A DNA stretch of 63,435 nt, filler included, from Ministeria vibrans ATCC 50519 (lineage: Eukaryota > Protista > Filasterea): NCBI GenBank assembly GCA_943704425.1. It is 4 parts of 4 records of this genome, joined end to end, with 100 filler letters (N's around TTAATTAATTAA, not from the genome) between each part and the next. Parts side by side here need not be neighbours in the genome. Positions count along the whole stretch, not along the records: positions 1 to 31,937 come from CALSCP010001633.1; 3 more parts are not named here. The stretch is one strand, 5' to 3'. The notes beneath the pieces were generated by a model. That model was not told the origin of the DNA, made no database searches, and was given only the letters and a program-made list of their open reading frames with translations. The position numbers and the translations under genes were made by a program. Positions within the stretch are counted from its first letter, which is position 1; each line of letters starts with the position of its first letter. Shown here piece after piece: positions 2,788 to 28,651 of this stretch.

Positions 2788-4395
2788 ATGTGCGAGAATA
2801 TTCCGCCTTCGGAGCTGATGAAACGCAAGTACAACGCCTTGCAAACCTGGCATGGGGTGAAAGGGTTTATCGCATTCTGCCAGCACCTGAGCACGCACAA
2901 TATAAAGCCTTCGGCGATTTTCCACGCACTGCCGACGGACGGCGATGCGCCGGGGACAGTCCGCCTTGTCACAGTGGCAGAGAACACGCGTCTCTCCGTC
3001 GACAAGATCATCGATATGGTCGCACCCAGGGATACGCACTCCGATGGAGCGTGCATCACGTACGCGTGCGCCCTTCACAGCTATTCGTCGTGCAAGCACG
3101 AGTTTATCCTCGACCTGCTTCTTCACCTGAAGAGCCAACTGAAGGACAAGGTCTCGTCCTGCAATCGGGCGTCGGGCACCAAGAAAGATCTCGCAACGCT
3201 CACTTTCACGGCGAAACCTCCCCACGGCGGGACTATTGAATTGTGCTACGGCGGAGAAAGAGAGGTGAAGATTCAGTGGTCACCATGCAAAGCAACAGGC
3301 AAGCTTGGGCCGCAGGAAGCAGACCTGAAAGCAGTATTGGCTCTCATCAGGCGCCCCTCCTCACCGACAGCACTTGGATGTACATGCACATACATCACTA
3401 CTACCGCCGCCGTCAACGAAGACCAAAGCATGTGCACAAACCCAGAGCGTAAAAGACCCGCCCAATCGTTGGCACATGAGAGCGGAGAGGCACACCCTCT
3501 GAAAAAGCACCACGCCTTGGACATCGATGAATTTAAGCGCGCCTTAGATGCGCCAGCCTCCTTCACTCGAGAGACGACGCTAGCATCCTCCAGCACAACA
3601 ACAGACCCAAACAGTGGCAGTCGCAACGCATCAACAGGCGAAGACAGCAGTCCAAGTACATCAGTCGTCATACGAGACGACGACTCCTGCTACTCCAGCG
3701 ACGAGAGTTCCTTTACCTGCACGGCTAATGCAGGTGAGGGCGATTCTCTGCCGTTTGAACTCCCGCTCGATTTAGGCGCGTCTGAAATAAAGGCTTTGGC
3801 ATACTGTGCCGCCGTATCACTGGGCTCAAGTGTGGATGACGGCGCTGTAACCCCAAACAGTTGCGATAGGTCTCCTTCCATGGGCGCACGTCCTGTTTCC
3901 ATGGGCGCGCGCCGCACTGTTGCAACTGCTGCAGCGCTCCCATCCACAACTGTAGTAGAGGAAGACGACGATGGTGACGATGATGACGACGACTTTGGCC
4001 ACACCACGATTATGATGGGCGCACGTCCTTGTTCCATGGGCGCGCGCCGCACTGTTGCAACTGCTGCAGCGCTCCCATCCACAACTGTAGTAGAGGAAGA
4101 CGACGATGGTGACGATGATGACGACGACTTTGGCCACACCACGATTATGATGGGCGCACGTCCTTGTTCCATGGGCGCGCGCCGCACTGTTGCAACTTCT
4201 GCGGATGAAGACGCTGATGATGACGACGACGATGATCATGAGTTAATTGCAATGGGTGTGGCAATGGGCTCACTCAACCTCAGCTACGTCAACAAAAAGG
4301 ATGACGAAGATGACGACGAAGATGACGACGAAGATGACGATGATCCTGAGAAGTTGCTGCCAATGAGTACGGCGATGGGATCACTCAGCAAGTAG
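2788..4395 (+). CDS. Orphan protein B, tandem paralogue of 264-1850, with acidic repeat tail
   Basis: 535-aa ORF with the same N-terminal motifs as protein A; internal 45-aa tandem repeat; possible 5'UTR intron 2692-2734. Confidence 0.75.
   Translation: MCENIPPSELMKRKYNALQTWHGVKGFIAFCQHLSTHNIKPSAIFHALPTDGDAPGTVRLVTVAENTRLSVDKIIDMVAPRDTHSDGACITYACALHSYSSCKHEFILDLLLHLKSQLKDKVSSCNRASGTKKDLATLTFTAKPPHGGTIELCYGGEREVKIQWSPCKATGKLGPQEADLKAVLALIRRPSSPTALGCTCTYITTTAAVNEDQSMCTNPERKRPAQSLAHESGEAHPLKKHHALDIDEFKRALDAPASFTRETTLASSSTTTDPNSGSRNASTGEDSSPSTSVVIRDDDSCYSSDESSFTCTANAGEGDSLPFELPLDLGASEIKALAYCAAVSLGSSVDDGAVTPNSCDRSPSMGARPVSMGARRTVATAAALPSTTVVEEDDDGDDDDDDFGHTTIMMGARPCSMGARRTVATAAALPSTTVVEEDDDGDDDDDDFGHTTIMMGARPCSMGARRTVATSADEDADDDDDDDHELIAMGVAMGSLNLSYVNKKDDEDDDEDDDEDDDDPEKLLPMSTAMGSLSK
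3880..4197 (+). repeat. 135-bp (45-aa) in-frame tandem repeat, ~2.3 copies
   Basis: ATGGGCGCACGTCCT recurs at 3880, 4015 and 4150 with near-identical intervening sequence. Confidence 0.95.
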
Positions 4396-4664
4396 CATGT
4401 GTGCTTCGACAAAGATGATGACGACAAAGACGACGACGATGATGATGATCAGTGCCACGCTCATGCGAATCAGAGAGCAACTTAAAGAGTTGAATGTGTG
4501 TTTGTGTGTAGGTGTGTCTGTGTTTATGAATATGAGTAAGTGAGTGTGTTTATATATATATGTGTGTATGTGTGAGCGAGATGGCTAGTGTGAGTGGACG
4601 AAATGCAAAGATGAGACATACTTAAGAATTCGATACAATCATTATATTTTATTACAATCCTTTG

Positions 4665-7600
4665 TTATTTGGACAACTGAGTGATTGGCTCCCAATTGGC
4701 GGGCAGGGGCGAGTCAACGAGAGGACGACAGATTTTGGCCATGCGCGCAGATGGGGGATCGCCCTCAAAGCGCACGACAAGATCGTCAAAGGCGGCAAGA
4801 GCCGTGGCAAAGTCACGACGACGGTACGCTTCCAGGGCCAAGGCGTAATCGCTGCAGAGACGGTCGTAGTACGCGACGCGTTTTTCGTGAGCGGCTGCAT
4901 CACAGGCATCGTCGGGAAGGGGTTCGCTGTCGACAGGGGTCACAACAGCAGGACGCTGTGGCGTTGTCGCTGGTGTTGTTGTTGCTGTTGTCATTGTCGT
5001 CGAAATGTCATCATCGTCACTGCAGAACGGATCAGACGTGCGTCGATTTGACGAGGCAGCTCGCTCGCCGTGCCAGACGCGAGGACAGATGAGCTCGTAA
5101 AACGCAATGGCTTCGCTCTTGCCGGCGACTCGGCACCGGTCGACCTCGCGGTACACAAGTTTGCTGGGTCCGGCCGCGCGGATCGTCGCCTCAGTTGCGA
5201 GCACAAGTACCCCAAAGAACTTGGTGAGCGACTCGGTGCGCGCCGCAAGGTTGACCGTGTCACCAATCACGGTGTAGTCAAGGCGTTTGGTCGAGCCAAT
5301 GTTGCCACAGGTGAGATCACCTGTGTTGAGTCCGACGCCAACGTGGATCTCACGCAGGCCACGACGACGACGCTGGACGTTCATACGACGCCGCACCACC
5401 ACTAGATCAAGCGCAGCCAGACACGCGTCAAGAGCATCGTGCTCGCCGGCAAAAGGAACACCGTGTGCCGCCATCAAGCAGTCGCCAATAAAGCTCAAAA
5501 CAACGCCACTGTGATGTTCGCTCACCGCCACTGCCACATCAAAGTGCTCATTCAGTAGCTGCACAACCTCGCCCGAGTTCATTTCCTCGCTCAACGACGT
5601 AAAGCCACGGACATCACTAAAAAGCACCGTTGCATGCTGGCGCACCCCACCCAGACACACGTCGGCATCCGCCATCACCTTGGACAGAACCTGCGGTGAC
5701 AGATAGCGCCCCAGCGCCTGTCGTGCGCGCTTGGCCGCCGTAATATCCTCAATGCAGACAATAACGCCCGAGAGCTGTGTGGGCACGCCGGAAGAGTCAT
5801 CTGTGTTGTGCTCCAGGTCAGGCATGAGCAGAGGTGAGACGGAGTAGCTGATGGTGACGCGTGTCCCGTGTGGGGTGTCGAGATCGTAGATGACGTCGCT
5901 GATGGGATTGCCGGTGCGGTAGACGGCATGCACGTCAGCCAGGAGCGTCTTGTGGCCGCGCATAAGACGCCGAAACGTCACACCACCAGAGGATGCGTCG
6001 GTCGTGCTGTCGTCGGCAGTCGGGAAGTGAAAGAATTGCGAGAGGTGCTCGGGATGGTTAGACGAGACGTAGCGGCCAAGCGCATCAAAGGTAGTGACCG
6101 TCGTCGCAATGGCCTCAAGCACCGTCTCCTGATGCACCATCGACGAAACACCTTCGGCGTGCATGCGTGCGTGATGGAGTGCAATATGCGTCTGCGACGC
6201 GACCAACGTCAACAGATTTTCGTCGTCGTCGCTCAGCGGGACTTCCCCAGCACGCATGACCACGAGCACGCCCATCGAGCCACTGTCCACACGACTCTCG
6301 GCCGAGACACTCGTTGATGCGCCCACCGGCACAAGACACATCGACGTCGCCTTATCCAACATCGTCGTGAACATGTCGCGGTCATCTGCTCCCCCATCTC
6401 CCATTGGCAATGTACGCAGACGCTCCAAGTCCATAGCGCATTCCCGCTCCATCGACATACGATCTGTAACCAACAGCGACTTGCCCGTATGTGCCACCAG
6501 GCCCACTGCAAACCCCTCCGCTGCTCCTATAGGCATATGCACCGATGCAAACAGCTCAGGCTGGTTGGCACGCAGCTGCTCACGTCGTCTCTCCAGCTGC
6601 GCCGCGCGCCCCCTTTTCTCCATCACTGACTCTGACTCACCAATGCTCCCACCAAAGCCAGAAAGTGAGTGCATTGACGCATTGACGTTGTCCCTTGCGT
6701 CGTCACCAAAGCCAGAGAGTGAGTTCATTGACGCATTGACGTTGTCCCTCGCGCGACTGCTAACGTTGTCGTGAATGTCACAGAGCGAGCTCATTGAAGA
6801 GCTGACTGATGGTACAATGTCGTCCGGAAGACTCTCGCCTATTTTTGTGGCGGTGGTTGAAGCGGTCGCTGTTGTGTTCCGTGGCGCGAATACACCACCA
6901 AAGAACCGTGCCTGGGCGCTGTCGGGAAGTACGCACGCCTCGGAGGCCCACAGGCGATCACCGTCACGCAGAAACAGCACGCATGTGTCAGCACGTACCA
7001 GACGACAGGTTTCGCCCATAACGTGACGCATGAGTGAGCGGAGGTCGCGACCACTGGCGAGCAGCGACGAAGTGATATCCGCGAGGCGTTGCATGCGACG
7101 GTAATCGGCGGCACGGTAGTGCAGAGCGTCCGTCTCGTGTGCGATGTGCATGCTAACCTCTTCTTTGATTGTCACTGTGGCCGGTCGCACCACAAGGTAG
7201 TTTTGGAGAGCAACGCCGACGAGTGCAGCAAGTGAGAGAAGCAGCAAAGCAAAGCGTGCGGAGGAGAAGTCGTCGCTGGTGGCGTCCCCGTACTCCTCTG
7301 CAAACTCGCGCAGCTGCTGTGCTGCGAGTCTATTGTCGCCATTGTGGATCGCCGTTCCAATCCGAGAGAGAGTCTTGCGCTGTGCGGGCGACATTGCGCC
7401 TTGGCTCAGACGTGTGCGGTGTTCGTCGTCAAGCACACCCGTCACAAGCGACACATGGAGTGCCTTGAGACGACTTACGCTCGTCGTGTGCAGCGTCGTG
7501 TGCACCTCCGAGCCAGCTGCAGCACTCGCAAGGTGCACACACGAGTCTAGTTGGCGCAAGGCCGCCACGCGTGGCATGTAGTCGCGAGCGAACACTGAAT

Positions 7601-8008
7601 CAAGGAAGTGTAATAAATAAGCGAATGTGTCAAACCAAAAAAAATAAAACAACCCAAAAAGAACCCAATAAAAAAAACAAAAAAAAAACGGAAGAGATGA
7701 GAATGGGTACCAAGCTGAAACCAAAGCTGAGAGAGAAGAATGAAGAGGATGATGGCGGCAGCGGTGACGTGGTGGCGCGTGAGCAGGGCGTCGACGCCCG
7801 ACAGCCGTCCGCGCTCCCTGTGGGCGAGCGCAACGAACGCGCGCGCCGTGACGAAGTCCTTTTCGCTGGGCAGCTCTGTGCGCGTGCCCGTGCCGCGTTT
7901 GGACGCGGAATGCTGCCCAGGGAGCTGAAATTCTTCGTCGAAGACTGACGATGAAAAGGAATTCGTTCCGGCGCGTGGACGCCGTATTCGCAACGACCCC
8001 ACCGACAT
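4665..8008 (-). CDS. Membrane-anchored bacterial-type class IIIb adenylate/guanylate cyclase (2TM-GAF-PAS-cyclase-TPR-like tail); exons 8008-7711 and 7594-4665, 1075 aa
   Basis: Cyclase motifs VLFSDVRGFT, FIGDCLMA, GVGLNTG and DYTVIGDTVNLAARTE; GAF ends (LVRADTCVLFL ... DENLLTLVASQTHIAL); PAS-like segment; C-terminal ALEAYRRRDF...PLPANWEP tail typical of bacterial CyaB-like enzymes. The GT-AG intron 7710-7595 restores frame and adds the first TM. Confidence 0.9.
6650..6755 (-). repeat. 54-bp in-frame tandem duplication (ARDNVNASMxSLSGFG x2) in a GAF-domain insertion
   Basis: Two near-identical 18-codon units visible in both DNA and protein. Confidence 0.85.
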
Positions 8009-8225
8009 GGCGCAAGAGTGTGTCTTTCTGGACTGTGCTCCGCCGCCGTGTGTAGCAGATTCAACGGCGCGTTGACGTTTCTGCCGAAAAAGAAAAGACA
8101 ATAATTGTTTATTAATTTTATTTTGTCGATACTCAATTTGTTTAGATCGACTTTAATCTGTCAGTTCCCGAATTGTGCTTTACCTGAGTTTACCATCCAT
8201 ACTTCTTTTTATTATTTGATATTGA

Positions 8226-8949
8226 ATGATGGAGGGAGCTCGGCGTCGCCGCGGAGGAGGGATGGAGACGGTGGACCAGTCTTCGGGCGGTGATGCTGAC
8301 GGCATAGGCAAACACGGCGACAAGAAGGTGTGACGCCTGCCACGCGTGTCCCGCGCGATGCTGACGTGGGGGGGTGGTGCTGTTCTAGGTGATGAACGTA
8401 CTCGTGGGCTCGATATTTGCGCTGTTGGCTGGTTTTTTCTTCTTTACGGTACGAACTCAAGTGTGTATTTGTGTTTGGACAGTGCAACAACAAAACAGCC
8501 GGCTTAGCTGTGCTTGTGAAGCCATGCATGAGTGCGGTGGGGTGTCTATCGGGCCGAGTGGTGGGCGACAGGCTGTGCTGAGCCGTTGTTTTTTTGATTA
8601 CAGAGTCTCCGTGAAAATGTTGTGTCGTTGACGCGTCAAATTCTGAGGACGTCAGTGGATCCCGTGACGGGACTCATCACGGAACACATGACCGTCGAGC
8701 ATGTGTTTGATCTCAACATCCACTACAGTAAGTGCAATGATGGGCTGTTGTGTTGGATTGGGACTGAGACAGTGACTCTCTAAGGTGTTGCTCTGTACAT
8801 GAGCATTGCCGCTCTTGGACACTTTGTGCTGTGTATTCCCATCGTGTTCAAGCGGTACACGTCGTTCATCGAACGTGGTATGGGTCCTCATCGATGGATT
8901 GAATACTCCTTCTCGGCCAGTCTCATGATGGTACGCCAATCAGTCAGTC

Positions 8950-8987
<38 letters not shown>

Positions 8988-9543
8988 TTTTTTCTCTCTC
9001 ATTTTTTCTCTCTCTCTTTCACTCACTTTTACTTTCTCTCACTTCTTTCTTTCTTTTTCTCACTCACTTTCTCTCTCTCTTACTTTCTTTCTCTTTCTTT
9101 CTCTTTCTTTCTTACTTTCTTACACTTTCTTCTAGGTTGTGATCGGTGTATCGGTAGGAATCCGTGATATTGCAGCCTTGGTGCAAATGGCGGTGTGCAT
9201 GAGCACGTGCATGCTCTTTGGCTGGCTCGCTGAGGAGGGCATTGCGACGCAGCACCCTCTCGGCCTGCGCGCTCACGTCTTTGCCTGGCTTCCTTTTGTC
9301 GCTGCCTGGACCACCATTGCTCATGCCGTTTGGTGCCTTCCCGCTGATGTACTTGCCGCGTCGACTGTGCCAATGACTGTCGCTGCCATTTTTGCTGGCT
9401 TTTGTGCCTTTGGCGTTGCACAGTCGGCTCACTTGTTTGGGTTCGTGTCCAATGAGGCGATTGAGCGCACCTTTGTCGTGCTTAGTTTATGGGATAAGGC
9501 GTTTCTTGCCACTTGCGTTGCCTTTGGCCTTTTGTCTGCCTAG
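8226..9543 (+). CDS. Heliorhodopsin (279 aa); exons 8226-8327, 8389-8448, 8604-8727, 8785-8930, 9136-9543
   Basis: All introns are GT-AG and phase-compatible. Spliced product has heliorhodopsin hallmarks: VALYMSIAALGHF (TM2 His), RWIEYSFSASLM (TM3 Arg and Glu counterion), GIRD, MLFGWLAE, and ERTFVVLSLWDKAFLA (TM7 SxxxK retinal Lys). Basic N-terminus and long loop after TM1. Confidence 0.9.
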
Positions 9544-9609
9544 ATCAAGCCTCTGTATTAAAATTGTGAGAAATAGTTTCACCACAAACAAAAAGTCACA
9601 ATAATTAAT

Positions 9610-9857
<248 letters not shown>

Positions 9858-9877: not shown

Positions 9878-11400
9878 ATGTCGCTCGTTCTCTACTTCGT
9901 TCTGGCTGCGTACGCTGCGGTCGTCTCGTCCCATCCCCTCACTGACTCAACCCTTGGGCTTAATGAGGTGGTGTGGCTGCCAGAGCACCAGGCGTTCGTC
10001 GGATCGCCGTCGCTTATTCGGCTCGACTCAGGTGTCATTCTTGCGAGCCACGACAAGTTCACCAGCGGCCCCAAACCCGTTTGTTCGTCTCCCGCCTATG
10101 ATAAACCCAACGCAACGAACGTGCCACATACACTTCTTAAGAGTCTGCCGGCCGCTGATCTTGGTAACGAGCTGGGACTTTTCAACAGCTTTCGTTTGTT
10201 TACTCGTCAAACTCGCACTCAGGCACCGTTTACGTCTACGAGAGTCGTGACAACGGCACCACATGGAGTGCGCTGTCGACTGTCCCCGGCTACTGGGCTG
10301 CCTTCTTTGTGAGTCCGTACGACGCTGGCGCCGTCTATCTGATGGGCACGACCAACAGCGACTCGCCAGCGCGAATCAGCCGCAGCACCGACCACGGCAA
10401 GACGTGGACGACCAAGGCGCTGTTTGGATCAACAGTCTTTGGTACAGGCCCCGTTCCCGTGGTGTTTACGGAAGCCGGATTTGCCTACCGCGCCATGGAG
10501 GTACTCTTTGTTTCTTGTTGTTTCTCTTCTGCGCCGTTGTGGCACTCCGCTCTCTCTCTCTCTATCACTTTGTTTCTTTCTCCTCTCTCTCTCTCTATCA
10601 CTTTGTTTCTTTCTCCTCTCTCTCTCTATCACTTTGTTTCTTTCTCCTCTCTCTCTATCACTTTGTTTCTTTCTCCTCTCTCTCTCTGAATTTATACACA
10701 CAGGTGGATCACAACCACGCAGCTCTTGTGTGGGCAGACGCGCGCGGAGGCAATTTGCTTGAGGCAGACTGGAAAATGAGCAACGCAGTGCCATTTGATC
10801 CACTGTGGTGGAATCACGGACCGTACTCGAACTCACTTTCTCCGACGCACGACTCACCCGCTTACTGGTCTATCGTGTAGAGGACATATCATTGAAGGAA
10901 ACGCAGTGCTCTCGCCCACCAACACGTCTGAAGTGTACAACATCTTGCGCATTGAGGCACTGCCCCAAGTGAACCAGGCTGTGTCGCTCGTGCTCGATAC
11001 CACCACGAACCATCTGCGTTTCGATCGCATCTTTGCGCTTCCCGGAGGCGCTTGCAAGTTTACAATCCGTCGCGATGCAGTCACGGGACTGTTTGTGACG
11101 CTGAGCAACAACGTGACGGACCTGTCGTGTCCCTCAATGCGCTGTGTTCTCACTCTTGCAGTCTCGTCAGATCTTTTTCACTGGCGCATCATTGAGACAC
11201 TGCTAACGGACGACACTGGAATGGAATGGGCCGATGTGCTGCGCTATGTGGGCTTCCACTATGTCGACTGGCAATTTGATGGTCCCGACCTGCTCTATGC
11301 CGTGCGCACGTCGTATCGTGGAGCCAATTCGTACCACAATGCGAACCGACTGACCGTCAAGAGAGTGCCCAATTGGCGTCAGCTGTTGAATGGAGAATGA
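9878..11400 (+). CDS. Secreted BNR/Asp-box beta-propeller (sialidase-like glycoside hydrolase); exons 9878-10078, 10142-10163, 10223-10500, 10704-10822, 10881-11400
   Basis: Signal peptide; Asp-boxes ESRDNGTTW, RSTDHGKTW and VSSDLFHW; motifs GSPSL, IEGNAV, LPGGACKF, GFHYVDWQFDG and ANSYHNAN. Splice phases are consistent, including a 22-nt micro-exon. Confidence 0.8.
10548..10687 (+). repeat. Intronic minisatellite (TCTCTATCACTTTGTTTCTTTC units)
   Basis: Four copies within intron 10501-10703; the same unit occurs in many other introns. Confidence 0.9.
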
Positions 11401-15112: not shown

Positions 15113-16907
15113 TCAATCCTTCTTGACCTTCTTTTTCTTAGAACAACTACAACACCAACACCAACAACAACAGCGAGCGCCGCAGAAAGAAACAAAGAGC
15201 GTCACGAGCACAGTAAGCGCACAAAACATGGCAATCAGGTCAAGATTGAGACGCTGCACAATGGGCCAGTCAAAGTTGACGGGACGCAAATGTCGCGTGC
15301 CAATGTTCGCCGCCTCCTGCACAATATCAGCCGCACGCTTGACGCCACCCGCACGGCGCGCCAAGTGGCGATGGCGCGCCATGTTACCCACTAGTCGTGC
15401 GTACTCGTGCGCCTCCAACGTCTTCTCTAGTGTCTCCACCAGTGTTGGGGCTGTGATGGGAAAGGGCGATGCATGTCCCACACCCGCATAGTCCAACAGG
15501 TGTGCCTTGCCCATCTGGTCCGCCAATGCCGCCGCACCTACCATAGGAAGACCCGCAGCAATCGCTTCAAACGGCGACGACTGTCCACAGTGCGTCAAAA
15601 ACACACGCACTCGCGGATGGGCCATTGCCGCCATCAGCGACGGTCTCAACCAGGTCACAATGCGCAGGTTGGGGATGGTACTGGCGTCCACCCCCGCCTT
15701 GGCCAAATCCTCCTGTTGCCACTCTGGCATCCGCCACAGCACGCGCATCCGCAGTGTCGATCGTGACCCGCCCTCTCCGTCGCCATTAAGCAGACGCACG
15801 GCCTTGACCATTTCCAGCATGCGCGATAACGGTAGAAACCCGCTCGAGCCAAAGCTCACCAGCGCCACTCCATCGTCCGTTGCATTGCCCTCAACAAACG
15901 CCCGTGTGTCTGCATCGAGTTGCTTCCAGCTGCCCGCGTCAAACTCGTCCTCGGGAAGGGGAATGGGACCAACGTAAAAGTGATTAGAGGGGACAGCGTG
16001 GGGCCACATGAAGCCAATGTAAGTCGGATGAATCACAATGCCGCTTTCAAGAAAATCTTGAACTCCGGTGTAGGTCAAGCCCACGGTCGCAAAGAGCGCT
16101 TCCAGCTCAAAAACGTACCGGCCCACAAGGTCAAAGTTGATCAAAAGTACATTCTCAAGCCAGCGACCCAAACGCAGCCAGGGAGAGCGCAGTTCGTCAG
16201 CCGAGCGGGTCGTCAGACCCCCTGGCGTTGAAAGGTCCATCATCATTGTCGGCTAAACAAGCAAAAAGAAGAAAAAAAATCAAAAGAAAAACAATAAGTC
16301 AACACTCAACAGCAACCACTTAGAAGTTAGACGTTAGAAGACGTGACGTCAGCGATAAAAGCACACTCAAGGAGGAGAGGTGATGAAAAAGTTTTAACGC
16401 CAAAACAAACATTACCAAGAGCGGATGATTGAGCACGATGGGGATGCCGGCCGCTTTTGCTGCAACGCCAACTGAATTCGAGGTGGAATCAATGTAAACC
16501 ACGTCGGGTTTGAACTTGGCAATCTGCTCTTTTGCGTCGTGGTACACAACAGAAAAATTCTTGTACATGATCTGGCCAAAGGCAAGCTTGCCAAAGCCCA
16601 CCTGGTCGTTCATTTCAGCCAGCCGGCTCGCATTGGTGCAGAATGCACGTTCAAACTCCCGCGTGTACGAGTCGCCGCGCATCACGTGCGTCGGAATGCC
16701 TTTGAGAAGGCGTTCGTTGGTGTACGCGTCGGGTGCCAGCCACAAAACGTCTTCGCCACGAGCAATCAGCTCACGTGCAGTCGGTGCCAACGTCTGAACA
16801 TGCCCCAGCATTCCAAAGCACGACATGAGAATGCGCCGTGGGCGAACAGGTGCCTCGTCGGCGCGACAGAGCAAAGCGAACGCCACAACAACACACACAA
16901 TCAACAT
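15113..16907 (-). CDS. ER-type UDP-glycosyltransferase (GT1/UGT); exons 16907-16416 and 16252-15113
   Basis: Signal peptide, catalytic His (MLGHV), signature WLRPSLMAAMAHPRVRVFLTHCGQSSPFEAIAAGLPMV...ADQ, C-terminal TM and dilysine tail KKKKVKKD. Confidence 0.92.
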
Positions 16908-16954: not shown

Positions 16955-18256
16955 ATGCACTCAAATGGACATGCCCGAATCACCGCCTTTATTGTTTTGG
17001 TTGCGATAACGCTCTTCCTTGGATCTCTGACATATCTGCGAGGGTCCTTTTTCACCCGATCCGTTTCGACTCTCTCTGCCATCACTGACTCGACCCACAC
17101 CAACGAAATCACCCGCATTCCCACCCCACCGCCCTCCTCACACTGTTACCTCATGCCTGCCTGCGATGTTCGGTCGTCAACGACGACGACTCTCTTTGAA
17201 GAATCGCTCAGTGAATCTCTCAGTGTCAAACCTTGCGGCCAACTTGTGAACTCTTCGCATACGCTCAAATGGCAACAAAAACGCTCGAAACTGGACAAGT
17301 GCGGTAGTGGTGGTGGAAACATCGGGAGCACCAGCATGGTCGGTGGCCAGTGGCGCTTGCCGTGCCGTCCAGACACCTGTGCGCCAGTATCAGCCACCTA
17401 TTCCGTGCCGCACTTTGAAGAGGTCCAACGCGATCACGAAAGACTCGAAAGGTCGCTCGTGTGCGACTGGACGCGCGCCGTGTGGGAGCCCGAACAGTGT
17501 GTGCTGGAGCATGACCGTCGTCCGCACGAAATGAGGCGATGTAGTCGCGAGATGCACAACGTCGCAGCCGTTTTCGTCTGGGGCGACTCCACCGTGCGCG
17601 GTGCTCTCAATGGCCTCCTCTCCTTCCTCAACGTCACTCTCACCGAGAAACGACTTAAAACTCAGGCTGTCTGGCAACCTCACGAGCACCCCACTTTGCC
17701 CTGGCCCTTGCTTCACTTCGCCTATCAACATTTGCACACGTCAACGCAGCTCTCAGACTTTCCCCGCCCCGATTTCGGCATCGACTTTGCCGCGATCGTT
17801 CTCGACGCAGCACGCACCAACCGCACCGTCATTGTGGTGTTTGGCGGCGCGGGTTCCACCTGGTACACTCCCAGCATGCTTACGCAAGTACGTCCGCGCC
17901 TGCAAGCCATGTACCCATCACTCAACTCCACTCAACTGCTGCACCACACACTCCGCTTCGTCTTCAAGTCTCCTCAGTTCAGCGCCACCTTCCACGCCCT
18001 GTCCACCCCCACCGCACGCACCGCCTACCTTGCCTCCCTTCACGCAACCCAACAGCAAGCGTATCACGAGCAGATGATCTACATGGACTCGTGGAACATC
18101 ACCGCACCCGTCTGGCCTATGGCGCGCCCCTTCAACACCAATTGCTTTTGCCACACCTTCACTCGTCTTGCTCCTCACGACTCCCGCATCTGGGGACCCG
18201 TCAACGAATGGCGCGCTCTCATGCTCGAACGCGCCCTCTGCGTCGCCTCGGCATAA
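16955..18256 (+). CDS. Type II membrane PC-esterase/SGNH-like protein (CPED1/NXPE/TBL-like glycan acyl-esterase or transferase)
   Basis: N-terminal TM anchor, W.P..C motif, VFVWGDSTVRG (GDS) and C-terminal CFCH; intronless 433 aa. Confidence 0.7.
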   Translation: MHSNGHARITAFIVLVAITLFLGSLTYLRGSFFTRSVSTLSAITDSTHTNEITRIPTPPPSSHCYLMPACDVRSSTTTTLFEESLSESLSVKPCGQLVNSSHTLKWQQKRSKLDKCGSGGGNIGSTSMVGGQWRLPCRPDTCAPVSATYSVPHFEEVQRDHERLERSLVCDWTRAVWEPEQCVLEHDRRPHEMRRCSREMHNVAAVFVWGDSTVRGALNGLLSFLNVTLTEKRLKTQAVWQPHEHPTLPWPLLHFAYQHLHTSTQLSDFPRPDFGIDFAAIVLDAARTNRTVIVVFGGAGSTWYTPSMLTQVRPRLQAMYPSLNSTQLLHHTLRFVFKSPQFSATFHALSTPTARTAYLASLHATQQQAYHEQMIYMDSWNITAPVWPMARPFNTNCFCHTFTRLAPHDSRIWGPVNEWRALMLERALCVASA

Positions 18257-19540: not shown

Positions 19541-22500
19541 TTACAGGTGGACAGACAAATTGCGAGAGAGACGCGTCGGCTGGGTACCGGTGCCTGTGGA
19601 GGAAGGCGCAAGGTCGCCCAGCTGATCGACAGTGTCGTCTTCGTCGTACCCCGCGGTGTTCTCGGGGACAAAGAGAGGGTTCACCACGACGTCGTCGAGG
19701 CCGAGGTCGTTGGTGGTGCCCCCGCTGGGGTTGGACTGCGACAGCACGCCGAGAAAGTCGGCAGGTGACAAGTGCTCCTCCGTCGTGAAACTGCTGCTTC
19801 GCGACGGGTTCATGACCTCATTGTTGTTGAAGGAGTCGACGGGGAAGAACTCGTTGAGAATGTTGCGCGTCGCACGTTGCTTCTTCCATTGTACCACACC
19901 AAAGACAACGGCAATGAGCAGTACAATGACCACAACGCCCACAACGCCTCCAATGATGCCGATGCTCATGCCCCCGCTGTTGCCCTGGCTGCCCGTCGCC
20001 GTGGACGCCGCCGTGGCCGAGACAAACGTCATTGTCCCACCCACGGCCGCAACAATGCTTGCCTGTGCCGCCGTGACACTATCGGCCACAATGGTTCCCA
20101 TCACAGGCGCACTACCGTCGTTCTCGTTTACCACATACGTGACACGCACTCGCCCATTGGACAGCGCTACAATCGACAGGTATGTCACATCGGCACCCGA
20201 CACGGGCGTCGGCGCCGCCGCACGGCGACGCACCGACGCTGTCGTGTTGTCGCGGTACGTATTGACAGCGTTTGCAATGGCATCCGACAGTGCCGTCTCG
20301 TGGTCCATCACACCGTTTGTCGTCGCACTACCCAGAATCATCAGCACACTGTTGGTCGACTCTTCCGAAGTCGGCACAAACCCATTGCATGCGTCCACCG
20401 CATCCTCCACCAACGTGTAGCCAAAGACGCACTGGCTGCACTGCGAGTTACTCGCCGACGTACACGTCAGCTTCGTCGAGCGACAGTTGGCAATGGCGGT
20501 GCACGGTACACATACGCCTCCGCTTAGGAAGTAGCCCTGGCCACACGCCGCGCACACCGCGTCCGTCGTGCCTGCACACGTCGTGAGCGTCGTGCAGCCG
20601 GTGAAGTCGCTCAGAGTGCTGCACGCGGTGCATCCTAAAGCATCGCCGTAAAAGTTGGTCGCGCAGGTGCACGTGTATGCATGCACGCTGTCCGCACACG
20701 TGTTGGCTGCATCGCCACACGGCGACGACGCACACTCGTCAATGTCCACGGCGCAGTCAGAGCCGCCAAAGCCCTGCGCACACGTGCACGTAAATGACCC
20801 CACGGACTGGGTGCACGTCGCGCCGTTGGTGCACGGCGACGACGCACACTCGTCAATGTCTGTCTCGCATGTCACACCCGCATAGCCCGTCACACATGAA
20901 CACGTAAAGCTGTCAATGCCATCGGTGCACGCTGCTCCGTTTAAGCACGCACCGGATGCACACTCGTCCACGTCAGTCGCACAATCGTCGCCCATAAACC
21001 CAGACGCACACAAACACACGTGGCCATTGAGACCATCCACACAGGTGGCGCCGTTGGTGCAAGGACTCGACACACACTCGTCAATATCTGACTCACATGT
21101 CACGCCCGTCGTGCCGGCCACACACGCACACGAAAAAGCATTGGGAAGATCCAAACACGTTGCACCATTCTCGCATGGACTCGACACACACTCGTTCAGG
21201 TCGTCGGCGCACAACGTCCCGTCAAATCCACTGCCACACACACACGAAAAGCCGCCGGACCCGTCCACACAGGTGGCCGTGCCATGACACGGCGTCGAGG
21301 CACACTCGTCTACGTCCGTCTCGCATCGTGTGCCCGCGAAACCGGGCGCACAAGTACACGTGAACGTGTTGATAGCCTGCTGGCAGTTGGTCGCGCCGTT
21401 GGAGCACGGCGACGACGCACACTCGTCAATGTCCTCCTGGCATCGATCGCCCGTAAATCCTGGAAGACACGCACACGAGTAGGCATTGAGAGCATCGCCA
21501 CAGGTTGCTCCATTCAGGCACGGATTTGACGCACAGTCGTTGAAGTTGGTCTGGCACCGTGTGCCCTGGTAGCCAGCAACACACGCACACTGGTACGAGT
21601 TGATTCGGTCGAGGCAAGTGCCGCCATTTTGGCAAGGTGCCGAAACACACTCGTCAATGTTGTTTTTGCAGGTGAGGCCGGTGTAGCCGGCGACACACGT
21701 GCACGTGTAGCCTGCAAGGCTGTCCGTACAGGTGCCGCCAAATTCACAAGGATTCGACAGACATTCGTTGATTGCCGACTCGCACACGGTGCCGGTAAAT
21801 CCATCGGCACAGGTGCACGTGAAGCCGTTGGTCACGTCGGCACAGGTGGCGCCGTTGGAGCACGGAGAAGAGGCACACTCGTCGACGTTGCTCGTACATG
21901 TTGGATCGAACAGACCGGCAGGACATTCGCAACTAAAGGCGTCAACCAAGTCGGTACAGGTGCCACCGCCGGCACACGGGTTAGGCGCACAATCGTCAAT
22001 GTTTGTCTCGCACAAGGTGCCGGTGAAACCGGCGACACAGACACACGAGTAGGACGCAACCTCGTCGTTGCAAACAGCCCCATTCTGGCACGGCGTGCTC
22101 GCACACTCGTTGACGTTGACAGCACACGTGTCGCCCACATAGCCAGCGGCACAGTCGCACGTAAACTTGTCAATGCCGTCGTTGCATGTGCCGCCATTGT
22201 CGCACGGCGACGAGGCGCACTCGTCAAGCTCCGAGGCACAGTCGGAGCCGGTAAAGCCGCTGGGACACAGGCACGAGTACACGTTGGGCAACACGCCCAC
22301 AGTAAGCGTACCCGTCATGGTGGTGGGGTGCACCGTGCACTGGAAGGTGACCGATCCAAGCGCGGTGACCCGCTGCTCAAAAACGCCACCCGACGGCGAC
22401 ATGAAGCCCGAGTCAAACGACTGTGTACTGCCCGCCGTCGTTGTGACAGTGTGCGTCGCGCCATCGGTGGCAGTCCAGCGCACAAGGTCGCCCTGGTGCA

Positions 22501-25500
22501 CTTGCACTGACAGGGGGAAAGGACCGCACGCGAGACACCAGTTGATGTTGCGCACAGTGGGCACCGATTGCACACACATGCCGCCGTTGGTGCACGGCGA
22601 CGAGGCACACTCGTCAATGTCCGACTCACAGAGCACGCCCGTGTAGCCAGACACGCATGCACACGTGTACCCATTGATACCATCGGTGCACTCGGCACCA
22701 TTGAGACACGGCTGCGGCGCGCACTCGTCGATGTTCGTCTCGCACCCAACGCCAACAAACCCGGTGACACACTGACAAGCATACCCGTCGATCTGATCAA
22801 GACAGGTGGCGCCATTCGCACACGGCGACGAAGCACACTCGTCAATGTTCACCTGGCAGTTGGTACCCGTAAAGCCCGCCTTGCACTCGCACGTGTACAC
22901 GTCGGGAGCACGCACCCCTACTTCGAGCTTGCCCACCATAAATGGATGCAGAGAGCACTTGTAGTCGATAGCACCGGCCGCCGATAGTGTCTGCTCGTAG
23001 ACGCTGCCTGGTGGAAGCTCGCCCGAGTCAAAGCTCATAGCCCCGCCCGCCAAGGTAGTCACCGTGTGCGAAGACGAGTCGGTGAAGTCCCAACGCACCG
23101 TGTCACCCAGAGTGAGACCCGCCGTTGTCACGGGAAACGACCCGCACGCCAGACACCAGGGCACGGTGACCGTGTGTCGCGTGCCCTCCTGACACGTACC
23201 GCCATTTTGGCATGGATTCGACGCACACTCGTTAATGTCCGTCAAGCACTGGCGGTCGGTGTAGCCGGCAACACACTCGCACGAGTACGAGCCAATAATC
23301 TGTGTGCAAGTGCCACCATTTGCGCATGGATTCGAAGCACACTCGTCGATGTCACTTGCACAGTGCACACCGGTAAAGCCTGTCACACACATGCATGTGT
23401 AGCCCGCCACAACGTCGTTGCAAGTGGCACCGTTGGTGCACGGGCTCGATGCACACTCGTCCGTGTCGGTCTGGCAAGTGACACCATGCCACCCCGTGAC
23501 GCACTCGCACACAAAACTCGCCACCCCATCGTGGCACGTTCCAGCGTTAAGACAAGGCGGCGGACTGCACTCGTCAACGTTGGTTTCACAACGGACACCA
23601 GTGAAGCCGGATGGACAGGCGCACTCAAAGGAAAAAGCGCCATCGGCACAGGTGCCGCCATTGCTGCAGGGAGAGGAGTCACACTCGTCTTCGTTCGTGT
23701 CACACTGAACCCCCGAGAAACCCGCCGCGCAAATGCACGAGAACTTGTTGACCCCGTCCACACAGGTGGCACCGTTGCTGCATGGCGACGAGTCGCACTC
23801 GGGGATGTTCGTTTCGCAGACGACACCCGTGTACCCGGCAACACACACACACACGTAGCTGGCAAGACCGTCGAGACACGTCGCGCCGTTGTTGCACGGA
23901 GTGGAACTGCACTCGTCAATGTTCGTTTGGCAATGAGTACCGGTAAAACCGGCGGCGCAGGTACAGGTGAACGAGTCAATGCCATTGAAGCAAGTGGCAC
24001 CATTGCTGCACGGCGACGAAATGCACTCGTCAATTTCAACGCAAGTCGGCATGGAGCGAGACCAGACGGCAACCTGCCGCACTGCACTCACGACGTTGCG
24101 CGAGCGCTCAAACGGCTGGCAGGTTGAGCTGCTCGCACCGACCAACTCGTAGCCGGCGTCGCAGGTGAACTGGCACTCGCTTCCCACGGCAATGCCCGAC
24201 GTGCAGCTCACTGCACCATTGGGTGGTGCCGAGAGTGGCACGGTACAGCTGTGCTTGTCGGCACAGCAGCGCACGGCGGCCGTTGTGGTCCACGCCGAGC
24301 AGGTCAGCGGGAAACTGCCAATTTGCGAGGCGACCCCGGCCAGGCGGTAAAACATGTTGGTGCCACAGCTCGTTTGAGTCCATATCGACGCGGAGTCATA
24401 ACTGCAGCCTGTGCCCGCAGCCACATTATCTTGAACCTCCTGAAGCGTACACAATCGCGCGCCAACATCGAGGCACGCGGAACGAGCACTCGTCCATGTA
24501 GCAGCACTGGGAAAGCACACGGAGGCGCTTTCGTCGGCGAGAACAAAGGACTCGGCTTCGGCACACTGATCGGGCGAGGTTGGCTGCTTAAACTCAAAGT
24601 TGATGGCGGTGCAGGACGAGACGGAAACGGGTCCGTCGGCACAGCAACGGACGCGCGCGACGGCAGTCGATTGACCCGGCGTGCACAAGGGCGTGCCGGA
24701 GCCGGCTGTACTAAGTGTGTAGTAGCCCGAGGCGCACGAGGTCGAGGACCAGGTGACCGTGTTGCCACAGCTGCTCGCGTCGTCCGCTTCGCCGTTGGCA
24801 AGCTCGTGAATGGTGCACAATCGTGCTCCTAACGCACTGCAGGCAGTCTCGGCGGCGGTGTGGGTGACAAAGTTGGTATAGCACGTGCCACCGGTGTCCT
24901 TGCCCAAAGCGCACACACGGTGAGCACCAGGCCCGCTCCCGACGCCCAGGACGTCGCACTGTTTCGCGGAGGGTACAGGAAAGGCACCGAGGGTTGTCGG
25001 ACCCGACGCCATCGAGCCAGTCACCAGAGGCACGCACTCGGTGGTACCACTCCATGCGGCAGTGGCACGAACAGTCTTGCGATAGGCCTGCTCGGTTTGA
25101 GCGACGCATGAGACTGTCTCGTCGCCCAACAGGTAGTAGCCATTGTCGCACACTGTGGTACATGCCGAGTCGGTGTTCGCCGAGTTGCTGCAATATACAC
25201 TGCCATGCGCAACAACAGGCACCGCCTTGCAGGCGGTCACGTCGCCACAACACCGTACGTTGGTCGTGGACGTCTCGGCAACGCAAGAGGTGGCACACAG
25301 AGAAGGATTGCCACATTCGCTGCTGCGCTTTCCAGCAGCGCACATGGTTGACGTAAAAATAGAGGTAGAGTCATAATTGCACCCGGTGCCGCGCGTGGCC
25401 GAGTTGGTCATCTCTTCCAAGGTACACACACGTCCACCGACTCCTTCGCAGATGGAGGTTGCCTGTGCAAACGTCTTGGCTGCTTGACATGCGAAATTGA

Positions 25501-28500
25501 CGTTGTCCGACTCGCCACACAGAGTTGTCTTGACCCACGAAGGTCCATTGACGGGCGTGGTAAATGCCAGGGCGGGGCCGCACGAGACTGGACTCACTTC
25601 AAAGTAGCTACAGCACACCGTGGTCACGGTAGTGTCGAGTGGTGAGGAGCACTCGAGCGGAGTGGTGCCCAAGTTTGCCGTGTTGCCCGCCGCCGTGTAG
25701 TAGCCGGAAGAGCCGTCCGCGTTGAAGCACGTCGTCTGCGACCACACGCGCTTTGTGTCAACAGCACACGATGTGGCGCTCTTGGCTTCGTCGCCGAGAA
25801 TCTCGCCAATGGTGCAAAGGCGTGCTCCCAGATTGGAGCAGGTTTGTGCAGCGTCGCTGTGTAGCTGCGTGCCAAGGCACGATGTCAGCATGTCCGTGCT
25901 ACTTGCACAAATGCCCCTGGAGCCCGCTCCCGATAGGTAATTGGTACCAATGTTGGCACAGGACTTGGTTGTCGCCAATTTGTGCACGATCAGCACGCAT
26001 TCTGGTACTCCAGCGGTCCAGCGACCCCAGCGTTGCGTGGAGGCACGCTCGAGGGCCGTCATGGTGCCACACTTGGTCGAGGGGTCACCGACGAGGCGGT
26101 AGCCGGCGTCGCAGGTGAAGGTACAGACCGAGCCAATGGTGGTACTGGATGTGCACGAGACGGAGCCATGTGCGGGGGCGAGTGGAGTGAAGTAGCAGCG
26201 CGCCTTGTCGGCGCAGCAGCGGATAGCATTGGCGGAAGTCTTGGGGGAGCACGTGGTGGGAGCCGATGTGGTAGGGGAACCATTGCCACGCATGGTCCAG
26301 GTCGAGCTACCGCCTACGTCGCAGGTAGTGGAGGAAGTAATGATACTGTTGTCAAAGCTGCAGCCGGTGCCGCTCGTGATCAAGCCCGTCAACGACTCAG
26401 TTTTCGTACACAGCCGGGCGCCACGGCTCTCACAGGTTGACTCGTACGTTGCATAGTTGGCGCCGCTGACACAAGGTTCGGATTCGCCACAGAAGACATC
26501 CCAAGGTGCGGGCCTGACGAGCCAATTTTCGGCGGTGAGTGGTGAAACGCCACAGGCACTTGTAGAGATGACATCGTTGGCACAACAGCGCACGTGAAGG
26601 AGCGTGGATGCGGTGGGGGGCGTACACTCAAGGGGGTTGTCGCCCATGCCATTCGCGGCACCCGCAAGCGTGTAGTAGCCGTTGACACCGTCACGCACAC
26701 ACGGCGTCTGTGTCCAAATCCGGGCGGTGTCGTGGCCGCAGCCGGATGCTCCGGGGATTCCTCCCTCCACTTCGGTAACGGTGCACAGACGCATACTGTT
26801 TGCTTGGCACAGATGGTGGGCCTCACGCAGCGTCACGCCCGGGGTAGCACCGTTTGTGGAGATGCCGTTGATGCAGTTGGCATTGCTTTGGTCACTTGTG
26901 TAGAGAGGGGGCTTCTGGCTCGCTCCACACGTTTGCGTGACGCCAACACTGGAAAGACCCAGGGCGGGACAGGACAGCTTGGAGCGAACAATGTAGTCGT
27001 CGGCCTTGCCATCTTCGGCACAACAGCGGTAGAAGAGCTTGCTGTCGCGCGAAGTGCATGCAAGCGCGTTACCCGAGTTGATCGACTTGGTGAGAACACC
27101 AGAGCCGCCGTTGGGGAGCTTGCACGGCGTCGAGCTCCAGAGACGCTCGTAGTCGTAGCCGCAGCCAGTGCCCGTTGTTTCGCCCACGTTGATTTCGCCA
27201 ATGGTACACATACGAGCTCCAACGCTGCGGCACGTGTGCGAGGCAGTCACGTAGTTCTGCATATTGGGCGGGCCGAAACTGGCGACATTGTCTACCGTCC
27301 CGCTCAGGTAGGTGCCGGCAAAACACTTTCCATTTGCAAATAGAGGCGAGCTGCAAATGGTAGCTGCGTTGTCGGTGCTAGTGTACGTGTCTAGAGTCCA
27401 GCCAAGGGCGGTGCACGATTTGGCAGACCAGGCGAGAGTAGCCGTGAGCGGCTTGACGATGGTGTTGCAGCAGCGGACACTTGCAGTCGAAGATGTGGCC
27501 GGGGTACACTGGCGAGGCACGGTGGCCAAGTTGGACGCTCTGCCTGACTGAGTCCAGAGTGAGATGGTACCGTCGACAGCGACGTCGCACACGGAGCTGG
27601 ACCAGATGCGCCTGTTGTCGTAGGTAAGGCAGCCGCCGTTGACGGAGGCCGCCTCGTCATTGGCAATTTCGGTGATGGTGCAGACACGACCGCCAGCTTC
27701 GCGGCACTCGTCGTTGGCCACGTCAAAGGTCACATCAGCCGTGCCACACTCCTTCATGACACACGTGCTATGACTGGTGCTGGAAGTGTCCCAGCCCGTT
27801 CCCAGCGACGAGCAGTGGTTGGGTGTGACGTAGGTGGCGGTGTCGGCGCAACAGCGAATACCGCCAGCGCCAAAAGAGGTGGGAGTACACGTGCCGAGAC
27901 CGGAACCTCCGCCGCCGAGCGTGAGCATCGCCTTGGTGGGAAGACCGGTCGACGAAGACTCACACACCGTTTCAGACCAGACGCCACGCGAGTCGAGGCC
28001 ACAATCGGCCGAGGCCGCCTCGCCATTGTCAAGTTCTTCAGATGTGCACAGGCGTGCGCCGATTGAGGCACACGCTGCCATGGCGTCCGAGTGGCTTCCC
28101 ACACCGAAGCAACGTGATGAATTTGGCGCGAGTGACGAGCCGCAAACATTTGGGAATCCTCCGTGAGAATTCCAGCCCAGTTCCGCACAGGTCTGATCGC
28201 TCGAAAGGGGTCCCACTGTCTCGTTGTAGAAGTACTGGGACTCCGTTGCTTGCGCGGGGACCGAGCGACGCGACATTTTTAGAACAACAGCTTCTTGGGC
28301 ACGCCCTTCGCGAACAAGGACGAGGCGAGCGTCGCGATCAAGACGAATGGGGTGATGTTGAGACAGCTCGACGCATGAGCGTGCGACGGAGGTCGGCGAT
28401 GAAGACATGTCGGCGAAGTGAGCAACCGCAAGAATCTCACTAGATGCTGCTGATGATATCCAAAGGGAGTTACCGTGAATGCGCACGGGACCGACATGCT

Positions 28501-28651
28501 GCGCAGACGATTGGGACTTGATGTAGACATGGGAGGCTGACAAGTGTGCGTGTGGCAGGTCGCACGGACCCCGCATCGCATCTGCGGTTTTGGTGCTCAA
28601 AAGCAAACACTCTGCGAACATGACTAGAAACATGCCGAGGGTCGCTCGCAT
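19541..28651 (-). CDS. Giant single-exon type I membrane receptor (3036 aa): signal peptide, 9 Cys-rich GARLCT...RCC modules, 3 Sushi/CCP domains, 25 calcium-binding EGF repeats (two containing cupredoxin inserts), Cys-rich TNFR-like segment, SEA-like stalk, TM, short tail
   Basis: Domains counted in the translation: (D/N)(I/V)DEC.S.PC.NG.TC repeats; HTV...C..HP.(.)M copper sites; [26 protein letters not shown] followed by KKQR. Confidence 0.92.

Follow-up and report, generated by a model that had tools for sequence, protein, structure and literature searches.

Layout and transcription of the gene pair

We investigated a window of 63,435 nucleotides (nt) from the filasterean Ministeria vibrans ATCC 50519 (assembly GCA_943704425.1), i.e., four parts of four records joined end to end with filler letters in between; all positions count along this whole stretch. 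Positions 4665-9543 hold a head-to-head pair of a heliorhodopsin (HeR) gene on the plus strand and a nucleotide cyclase gene on the minus strand. The HeR gene consists of five exons and runs from its ATG at 8226 to the stop codon at 9541-9543. The cyclase gene has two exons and runs from its ATG at 8008 to the stop codon at 4667-4665, such that the two start codons are separated by a spacer of 217 base pairs (bp) with a GC content of 39%. A first-pass annotation of this DNA had placed both start codons and the spacer exactly as we find them. It had also named both genes correctly, as witnessed by the PF18761 matches of the HeR and the PF00211 match of the cyclase. The locus is a genuine, expressed and divergently transcribed pair of eukaryotic genes.

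Within the HeR gene, exon 1 (8226-8327, 34 codons) codes for a basic N-terminal tail predicted to be cytoplasmic, exon 2 (8389-8448) for the 20 residues of helix A and exon 3 (8604-8727) for the long A-B loop. Exon 4 (8785-8930) reaches from helix B across the B-C loop into the first part of helix C and contributes His80 and the counterion Glu107 (48C12 numbering), as placed by PF18761 and by alignment with 6SU3/6UH3. Exon 5 including the stop codon (9136-9543, coding to 9540) spans, again based on PF18761, the remainder of helix C to helix G with the Schiff-base Lys. All four introns (61, 155, 57 and 205 nt) show GT..AG borders. The last of them (8931-9135) is filled with dense (CA)n and TC-rich degenerate repeats, which also occupy 10552-10687, and TC-rich 31-nt repeats like those of this intron occur in the next gene. 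The 3' untranslated region (UTR; 9544-9594) ends with the RNA contigs, and an (AAT)n array (9600-9682) follows directly. Between this array and a TAT/TAC run after 9840, i.e., shortly behind the HeR gene, we observe an isolated open stretch of 52 codons (9684-9839). Read by eye, it resembles the part of translation elongation factor 1-alpha that binds GTP. We consider a gene fragment, a pseudogene and an assembly chimera as possible origins.

Exon 1 of the cyclase gene (7711-8008) encodes a basic, putatively cytoplasmic N-terminus and the first transmembrane helix (TM1), as seen from its translation, its hydropathy and an RNA contig covering 7711-8081. It is followed by an intron of 116 nt (7710-7595, GT..AG on the minus strand). 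Exon 2 with its stop codon (4665-7594, coding to 4668) provides 975 codons and is backed by its open reading frame (ORF), RNA, Pfam and BLASTP. Counted from the exon lengths, the product comprises 1075 residues.

The RNA evidence consists of assembled transcript-like contigs from four public runs (X1, X2, X5, X6). Such contigs carry neither strand nor expression level, and their ends are minimal extents rather than mapped start sites. All five introns are absent from them, in accordance with the exon models. In X1, X2 and X5 all four HeR introns are removed, and the contigs of X6 show removal of the first two. For instance, a 980-nt HeR contig of X1 covers 8152-8325, 8387-8447, 8603-8727, 8785-8929 and 9135-9594. 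The cyclase intron is skipped in contigs of 3.5-3.8 kb from X1 and X2; record 1 of X1 has a contig that spans 4600-7594, with the exon-1 side covered at 7711-8081.

Five positions within the two genes differ between RNA and assembly. At 8665 in HeR exon 3, the contigs of all four runs read A where the assembly has T, which changes Val to Glu in the A-B loop. At 4973 in the cyclase, RNA contigs read T and the assembly G (Pro to Thr in a low-complexity linker). Both could be strain variation or assembly error. The differences at 6231, 7278 and 7808 are synonymous.

Towards the spacer (8009-8225), cyclase contigs extend 5' to 8081 in two runs, and HeR contigs begin at 8151/8152 in two runs from different studies. 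The spacer accordingly falls into three parts: the cyclase 5' UTR begins at 8009 and reaches 8081 or further, the assembled 5' ends enclose an AT-rich core (8082-8151, about 70 bp), and the HeR 5' UTR starts at 8152 or earlier and runs to 8225. The shared promoter suspected in the first-pass annotation gains support from these ends and from the joint presence of both genes in RNA assemblies. That is, the two genes share a promoter region of at most 217 bp.

Features and relatives of the two proteins

Single exons served as queries in all protein and profile searches. The HeR product (279 residues) matches PF18761 with exon 4 (profile positions 60-106, E-value 3.8e-12, 46.5 bits) and with exon 5 (107-241, E-value 8.9e-12, 45.3 bits), both well above the cut-off of 26.7 bits. 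The two profile ranges are contiguous and meet exactly at the exon 4/5 junction. When exon 4 is aligned to the 48C12 HeR (6SU3 residues 69-115), His is found at 80 and Glu at 107, the codon of the counterion being GAA at 8901-8903. In exon 5, the Lys K121 (AAG 9496-9498) occupies an invariant column of an alignment with 13 other HeRs, as do S117 and E110. By this alignment, K121 is the family's Schiff-base Lys in helix G (48C12 K241), and the HeR is predicted to be of the retinal type. At the His23 position of helix A we read, by eye, a Phe, which is also present in the nearest homologues P0122 and P0125; exon 2 itself has no profile match. The 34-residue N-terminal tail is strongly basic, which fits an N-in topology according to the positive-inside rule and is not proof of it.

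We searched 1.84 billion representative proteins with exon 5 and obtained only 25 HeR matches with E-values below 1e-3, i.e., one 83-residue fragment (P0121) with 57% identity and others with 27-40%. Judged by these identities, the HeR sequence is very divergent and a new member of the known heliorhodopsin family. The 'WDK' around the Schiff-base Lys is unusual and common to this HeR and the 57%-identity fragment, which sits on a 1530-nt contig (assembly GCA_025491055.1) that carries the last HeR exon alone. Other matches lie on contigs of about 1 kb, e.g., P0125 from sample 3300018932 of the Joint Genome Institute (JGI), which we take to be a metatranscriptome.

Some of the nearest full-length homologues (32-35% identity) are found on dense, intronless, virus-like contigs. 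This would suit a HeR that is an ion transporter like the proton-transporting viral V2HeR3 instead of a sensor and that needs no transducer. Ion transport by a viral HeR is indeed reported in work cited by PMC12873467 and PMC11109279. Still, the identity to the HeRs of virus-like contigs is low, and most characterised HeRs show no ion transport (PMC11109279), such that we regard a transporter as quite improbable.

The cyclase shows exactly two hydrophobic segments in its hydropathy profile, namely TM1 at the end of exon 1 (residues 74-99, about 7712-7789) and TM2 as the sole such segment of exon 2 (exon-2 residues 109-136, 7185-7268). The roughly 108 residues in between are all-helical in the fold model, with low confidence. 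CHASE3 and PilJ-type domains are periplasmic sensor modules, and clusters of both appear among the structure-atlas look-alikes of this N-terminal module; with scores of 0.85 or below, they serve as a lead only. Pfam reports no match for the N-terminal module, exon 1 or the PAS stretch even at E-values up to 10, and at the same threshold no HAMP domain is matched after TM2.

Downstream of TM2, Pfam, BLASTP and the fold model together yield a long helix followed by GAF, PAS, the catalytic domain and a C-terminal helical motif. The GAF domain (6177-7088) has a weak Pfam match (E-value 2.9e-5) and is interrupted by roughly 120 residues of low complexity, an insertion which coincides with a low predicted local distance difference test score (pLDDT) over model residues 232-354 and includes a 54-nt tandem repeat at 6650-6753. 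The PAS domain (5733-6134) is assigned by alignment with the Pfam-annotated PAS region of the bacterial homologue P0001 and by a PAS-like alpha/beta model with pLDDT 80-92. For the class III catalytic domain (5100-5639), PF00211 is matched with an E-value of 7.5e-25 and 88 bits (cut-off 21.9; E-value 3.7e-25 in the genome search), and the model exceeds a pLDDT of 90. This is also the case for the C-terminal helical, TPR-like motif (4683-4850), which according to BLASTP is common to the bacterial homologues. On these grounds the protein is, from its sequence, a receptor-type class IIIb nucleotide cyclase. The 2TM-GAF-PAS-class IIIb architecture proposed before thus stands, given the two hydrophobic segments, the GAF match, the PAS assignment by collinear BLASTP and fold model, and the Thr typical of class IIIb described below. 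Its extracellular helical domain, GAF and PAS are three potential sensor modules, which could supply inputs to the cyclase without the HeR.

Exon 2 is collinear with P0001 (32% identity, E-value 1e-68). More generally, the nearest homologues are bacterial GAF-PAS cyclases of Alphaproteobacteria, Acidobacteriota and Myxococcota, i.e., of diderms, whose identity is 32-36% and rises to 46% within the catalytic part; several of them have an N-terminal HAMP domain (PF00672). The relatives include one eukaryotic transcript, from Fabomonas tropica. In this closest eukaryotic homologue, the N-terminus is long and not of the membrane type, and the purine pocket shows the canonical Lys. No close eukaryotic orthologue was found in the protein collections, searches with the catalytic region alone included. 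As far as its sequence tells, the cyclase belongs to a known family, of which it is a new and divergent member. For prokaryotes, HeRs have been reported from monoderms only (PMC8612252). Because the cyclase relatives are found in diderms, it is unlikely that both genes were inherited jointly as one bacterial HeR-cyclase unit.

The active site retains the two metal-binding Asp as well as the transition-state Asn and Arg, as seen when 'FSDVRGFT', 'FIGD' and 'VNLAAR' are aligned to cyclases of known structure. The class IIIb Thr is provided by 'YTVIGD' at the second substrate-specifying position and is found in 164 of 166 scored homologues. The purine-binding position lies four residues ahead of the second metal Asp and is instead occupied by Ser (AGC, 5493-5495), where each of the 222 scored homologues has Lys. 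The Asp before it is lost as well, i.e., 'LSFIGD' is found for the 'DKFIGD' of the homologues, with 'LS' in place of 'DK'. No difference between RNA and assembly is reported at 5493-5495. At this position, Lys is conserved in adenylyl cyclases and Glu in guanylyl cyclases (PMC4215837); Glu is also what the best solved relative, Cya2 (2W01), shows. An adenylyl-cyclase label is unsafe because Ser replaces the Lys kept by all scored homologues. We therefore file the protein, on its sequence, simply as a class III cyclase rather than an adenylyl cyclase and make no call on the nucleotide that it produces. The first-pass annotation had gone further and proposed a light-to-cAMP module, a claim that is weakened by the Ser at the adenine-binding position and goes beyond the evidence.

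Independent neighbours or a coupled pair

The genome comprises 29.7 Mb in 2860 contigs and belongs to a marine organism, judged by near-identical sequence in seawater samples. Profile searches detect a single HeR locus and at least three cyclase loci. One of the other two (contig C1606, 43855-44530) is split into several exons and shows the Lys/Asp pair that is canonical for adenylyl cyclases. The second (contig C636, 33329-34753) belongs to a 1525-codon ORF with two catalytic domains. We also find at least ten loci for binding of cyclic nucleotide monophosphates (cNMP) and one locus of an RPE65-type carotenoid oxygenase, which, by its family, could be a source of retinal. A search of the genome for type-1 rhodopsins found none, with a search control that gave no signal, so absence is not shown.

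Given these data, we consider the HeR and the cyclase most likely to be independent neighbours that share a bidirectional promoter and not a dedicated sensor-effector pair, and assign a probability of roughly 0.55 to this reading. That is, both genes would use a bidirectional promoter, as is common in this compact genome, without a dedicated pairing of their products. The cyclase would then respond to inputs of its own, namely those of the extracellular helical domain, GAF and PAS, and the HeR may be a slow light sensor acting on some other partner.

Several observations argue for such independence. Short head-to-head spacing, which had been said to be common in this genome, does recur in the window: the ORFs 16320-16907 (minus strand) and 16955-18256 (plus strand) form a second tight pair, with starts only 47 bp apart (16907/16955). 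The three potential sensor modules of the cyclase point in the same direction, as does its Fabomonas tropica homologue, given the non-membrane N-terminus and canonical Lys described above. Finally, nucleotide cyclases are not among the ten groups of frequent neighbours that were listed in a survey of 448 HeR genes (PMC11109279). Likewise, no cyclase is found nearby on the virus-like contigs with related HeRs.

Four points weigh against independent neighbours. First, a gene density of about one per 2.7 kb implies roughly 11,000 genes and thus a naive chance of about 5e-4 of finding a cyclase on either side of the HeR gene. Second, contigs of both genes are present in X1, X2 and X5. Third, the cyclase is anchored in the membrane by exactly two helices, as are the transducers of sensory rhodopsins. 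Fourth, the bacterial HeR partners glutamine synthetase, photolyase and ABC transporter are all products of adjacent genes (PMC9529153, PMC9769723, PMC11109279).

The first of these figures is weaker than it appears due to post-hoc selection, i.e., the window was chosen after the fact and a kinase, phosphodiesterase, channel or G-protein component next to the HeR would have been equally interesting. Furthermore, in eukaryotes the adjacency of two genes is a much poorer guide to interaction than it is within operons.

The joint presence in RNA assemblies would also be expected if both genes were co-regulated members of one programme (e.g., light- or surface-related behaviour), where the promoter ensures joint expression and the proteins need no direct contact. 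The contig 5' ends only about 70 bp apart and the occurrence of both transcripts in the same runs are consistent with this idea. On the other hand, contig depth cannot measure co-variation, and X6 provides HeR pieces but no clear cyclase pieces. Overall, we judge a common programme of this kind unlikely.

The remaining points bear on direct coupling, in which the lit HeR would bind the cyclase and alter its catalytic dimer and hence its cNMP output. Beside the common promoter region and the co-expression, the location of the sole HeR locus next to one of three detected cyclase loci speaks for such a coupling, as does the precedent of bacterial partners encoded next door. In addition, the inferred cytoplasmic N-terminus of the cyclase and the basic HeR tail fit an arrangement in one membrane with all signalling parts on the cytoplasmic side, and the RPE65-type oxygenase and the cNMP-binding loci make chromophore supply and downstream readers plausible. 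Contacts might be made within the membrane via TM1/TM2, or by the cytoplasmic tail and loops of the HeR on the post-TM2 helix, GAF or PAS; we can offer these routes only tentatively.

Our searches for conserved linkage of the two genes, however, found no relative with a contig of sufficient length: the only close HeR relative is confined to its 1530-nt contig, and JGI metagenome contigs, scanned twice, contained no relative. The HeR surveys consulted contain neither a HeR-cyclase fusion nor a HeR-cyclase neighbourhood, and the pairing itself is unreported; what surveys do link to prokaryotic HeRs are histidine kinases (PMC8612252). A complex prediction for HeR exon 5 with exon-2 residues 1-180 of the cyclase scored 0.00, where the fragments were folded without alignments and the value counts neither way. 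The comparison with an SR-Htr-like transducer, as drawn in the first-pass annotation, survives in part, namely for the two TM helices and for the position of the gene beside a rhodopsin gene, but not for the missing HAMP domain match after TM2, which also counts against direct coupling. Taken together, we find a direct action of the HeR on the cyclase possible but doubtful. The same caution applies to the more specific picture of a two-component photoreceptor, in which the HeR would be the sensor and the two-TM GAF-PAS cyclase with its Ser/Thr purine pocket the effector that turns light into a cyclic nucleotide signal; we rate this as a minority view.

Further genes of the window are summarized here for completeness. 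The minus-strand partner of the 47-bp pair and the ORF 15113-16246 on the same strand correspond to a GT28-like N-terminal and a UDPGT C-terminal glycosyltransferase half, respectively. The two ORFs are 73 bp apart and probably represent one gene with an intron. The plus-strand partner (16955-18256), 47 bp from the glycosyltransferase start, is a divergent orphan ORF of 433 codons. A single ORF of 3036 codons (19541-28651, minus strand) encodes more than 20 EGF-like repeats and shows a weak plastocyanin/azurin-like copper-binding match. Finally, the ORF 2788-4395 (plus strand) is an acidic, Asp-rich orphan with no Pfam match, which contains 2.4 copies of a 135-nt unit with 98% identity (3880-4202).

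Known rhodopsin systems and implications

Among known systems, SRII-HtrII of haloarchaea is similar in that a seven-TM retinal sensor meets a separate two-TM signalling protein from an adjacent, co-regulated gene. The Ministeria pair differs by a HeR of presumably inverted topology in place of a type-1 rhodopsin, by divergent genes instead of an operon, and by the lack of HAMP after TM2. Its putative output is a nucleotide cyclase and not a CheA-coupling domain.

The rhodopsin-guanylyl cyclases (RhGC) of zoosporic fungi (BeRhGC/CaRhGC; PMC5967339, PMC10622942) share the class III cyclase domain, and the solved relatives of the catalytic domain studied here include those of the fungal enzymes (6AO9/6AOA). 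Retinal-based light control, which is hypothetical here, is realized there within a single polypeptide that combines a type-1 rhodopsin with an E/C guanine pocket; here we find two genes, a HeR and an S/T pocket. Enzyme rhodopsins in general (RhGC, Rh-PDE, HKR) are one polypeptide. The pair is not of this kind, as separate genes on opposite strands yield separate transcripts and the rhodopsin is a HeR.

Concerning the HeR, the pairs AbHeR-glutamine synthetase, TfHeR-photolyase and OcHeR-OmrDE are comparable since there, too, the candidate partner is the neighbouring gene. In contrast to the eukaryotic pair, these are prokaryotic operons with biochemical proof, and none has a cyclase as partner.

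With regard to the cyclase, the bacterial HAMP-GAF-PAS-class IIIb enzymes (P0001, P0002) are collinear from the GAF end through PAS and the catalytic domain to the C-terminal helical motif. Their N-terminus is of the multi-TM/HAMP type and their Lys is the canonical one, whereas the Ministeria enzyme combines a two-TM helical sensor module without HAMP with a large insertion in GAF, an intron and a Ser at the Lys position. The Synechocystis guanylyl cyclase Cya2 (2W01) is the best solved relative of the catalytic domain (E-value 1.3e-32), yet it has a Glu/Gly purine pair where Ser/Thr is found here.

To our knowledge, little is established about what heliorhodopsins do in the cell, and nothing for those of eukaryotes; the few proved partners are all bacterial. 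The locus offers a minimal and clean case for studying eukaryotic HeR signalling, i.e., one HeR and three detected cyclase loci, one of which shares the promoter region of the HeR. If the two-component photoreceptor proved true, it would be the first signalling output for a eukaryotic HeR and the first rhodopsin-cyclase system that is not a type-1 rhodopsin fusion. Coupling of the two proteins would thereby provide a signalling pathway for eukaryotic HeRs as well as a new two-part optogenetic design. If the two proteins are not coupled, the locus advises caution when reading function from head-to-head gene pairs in compact protist genomes.

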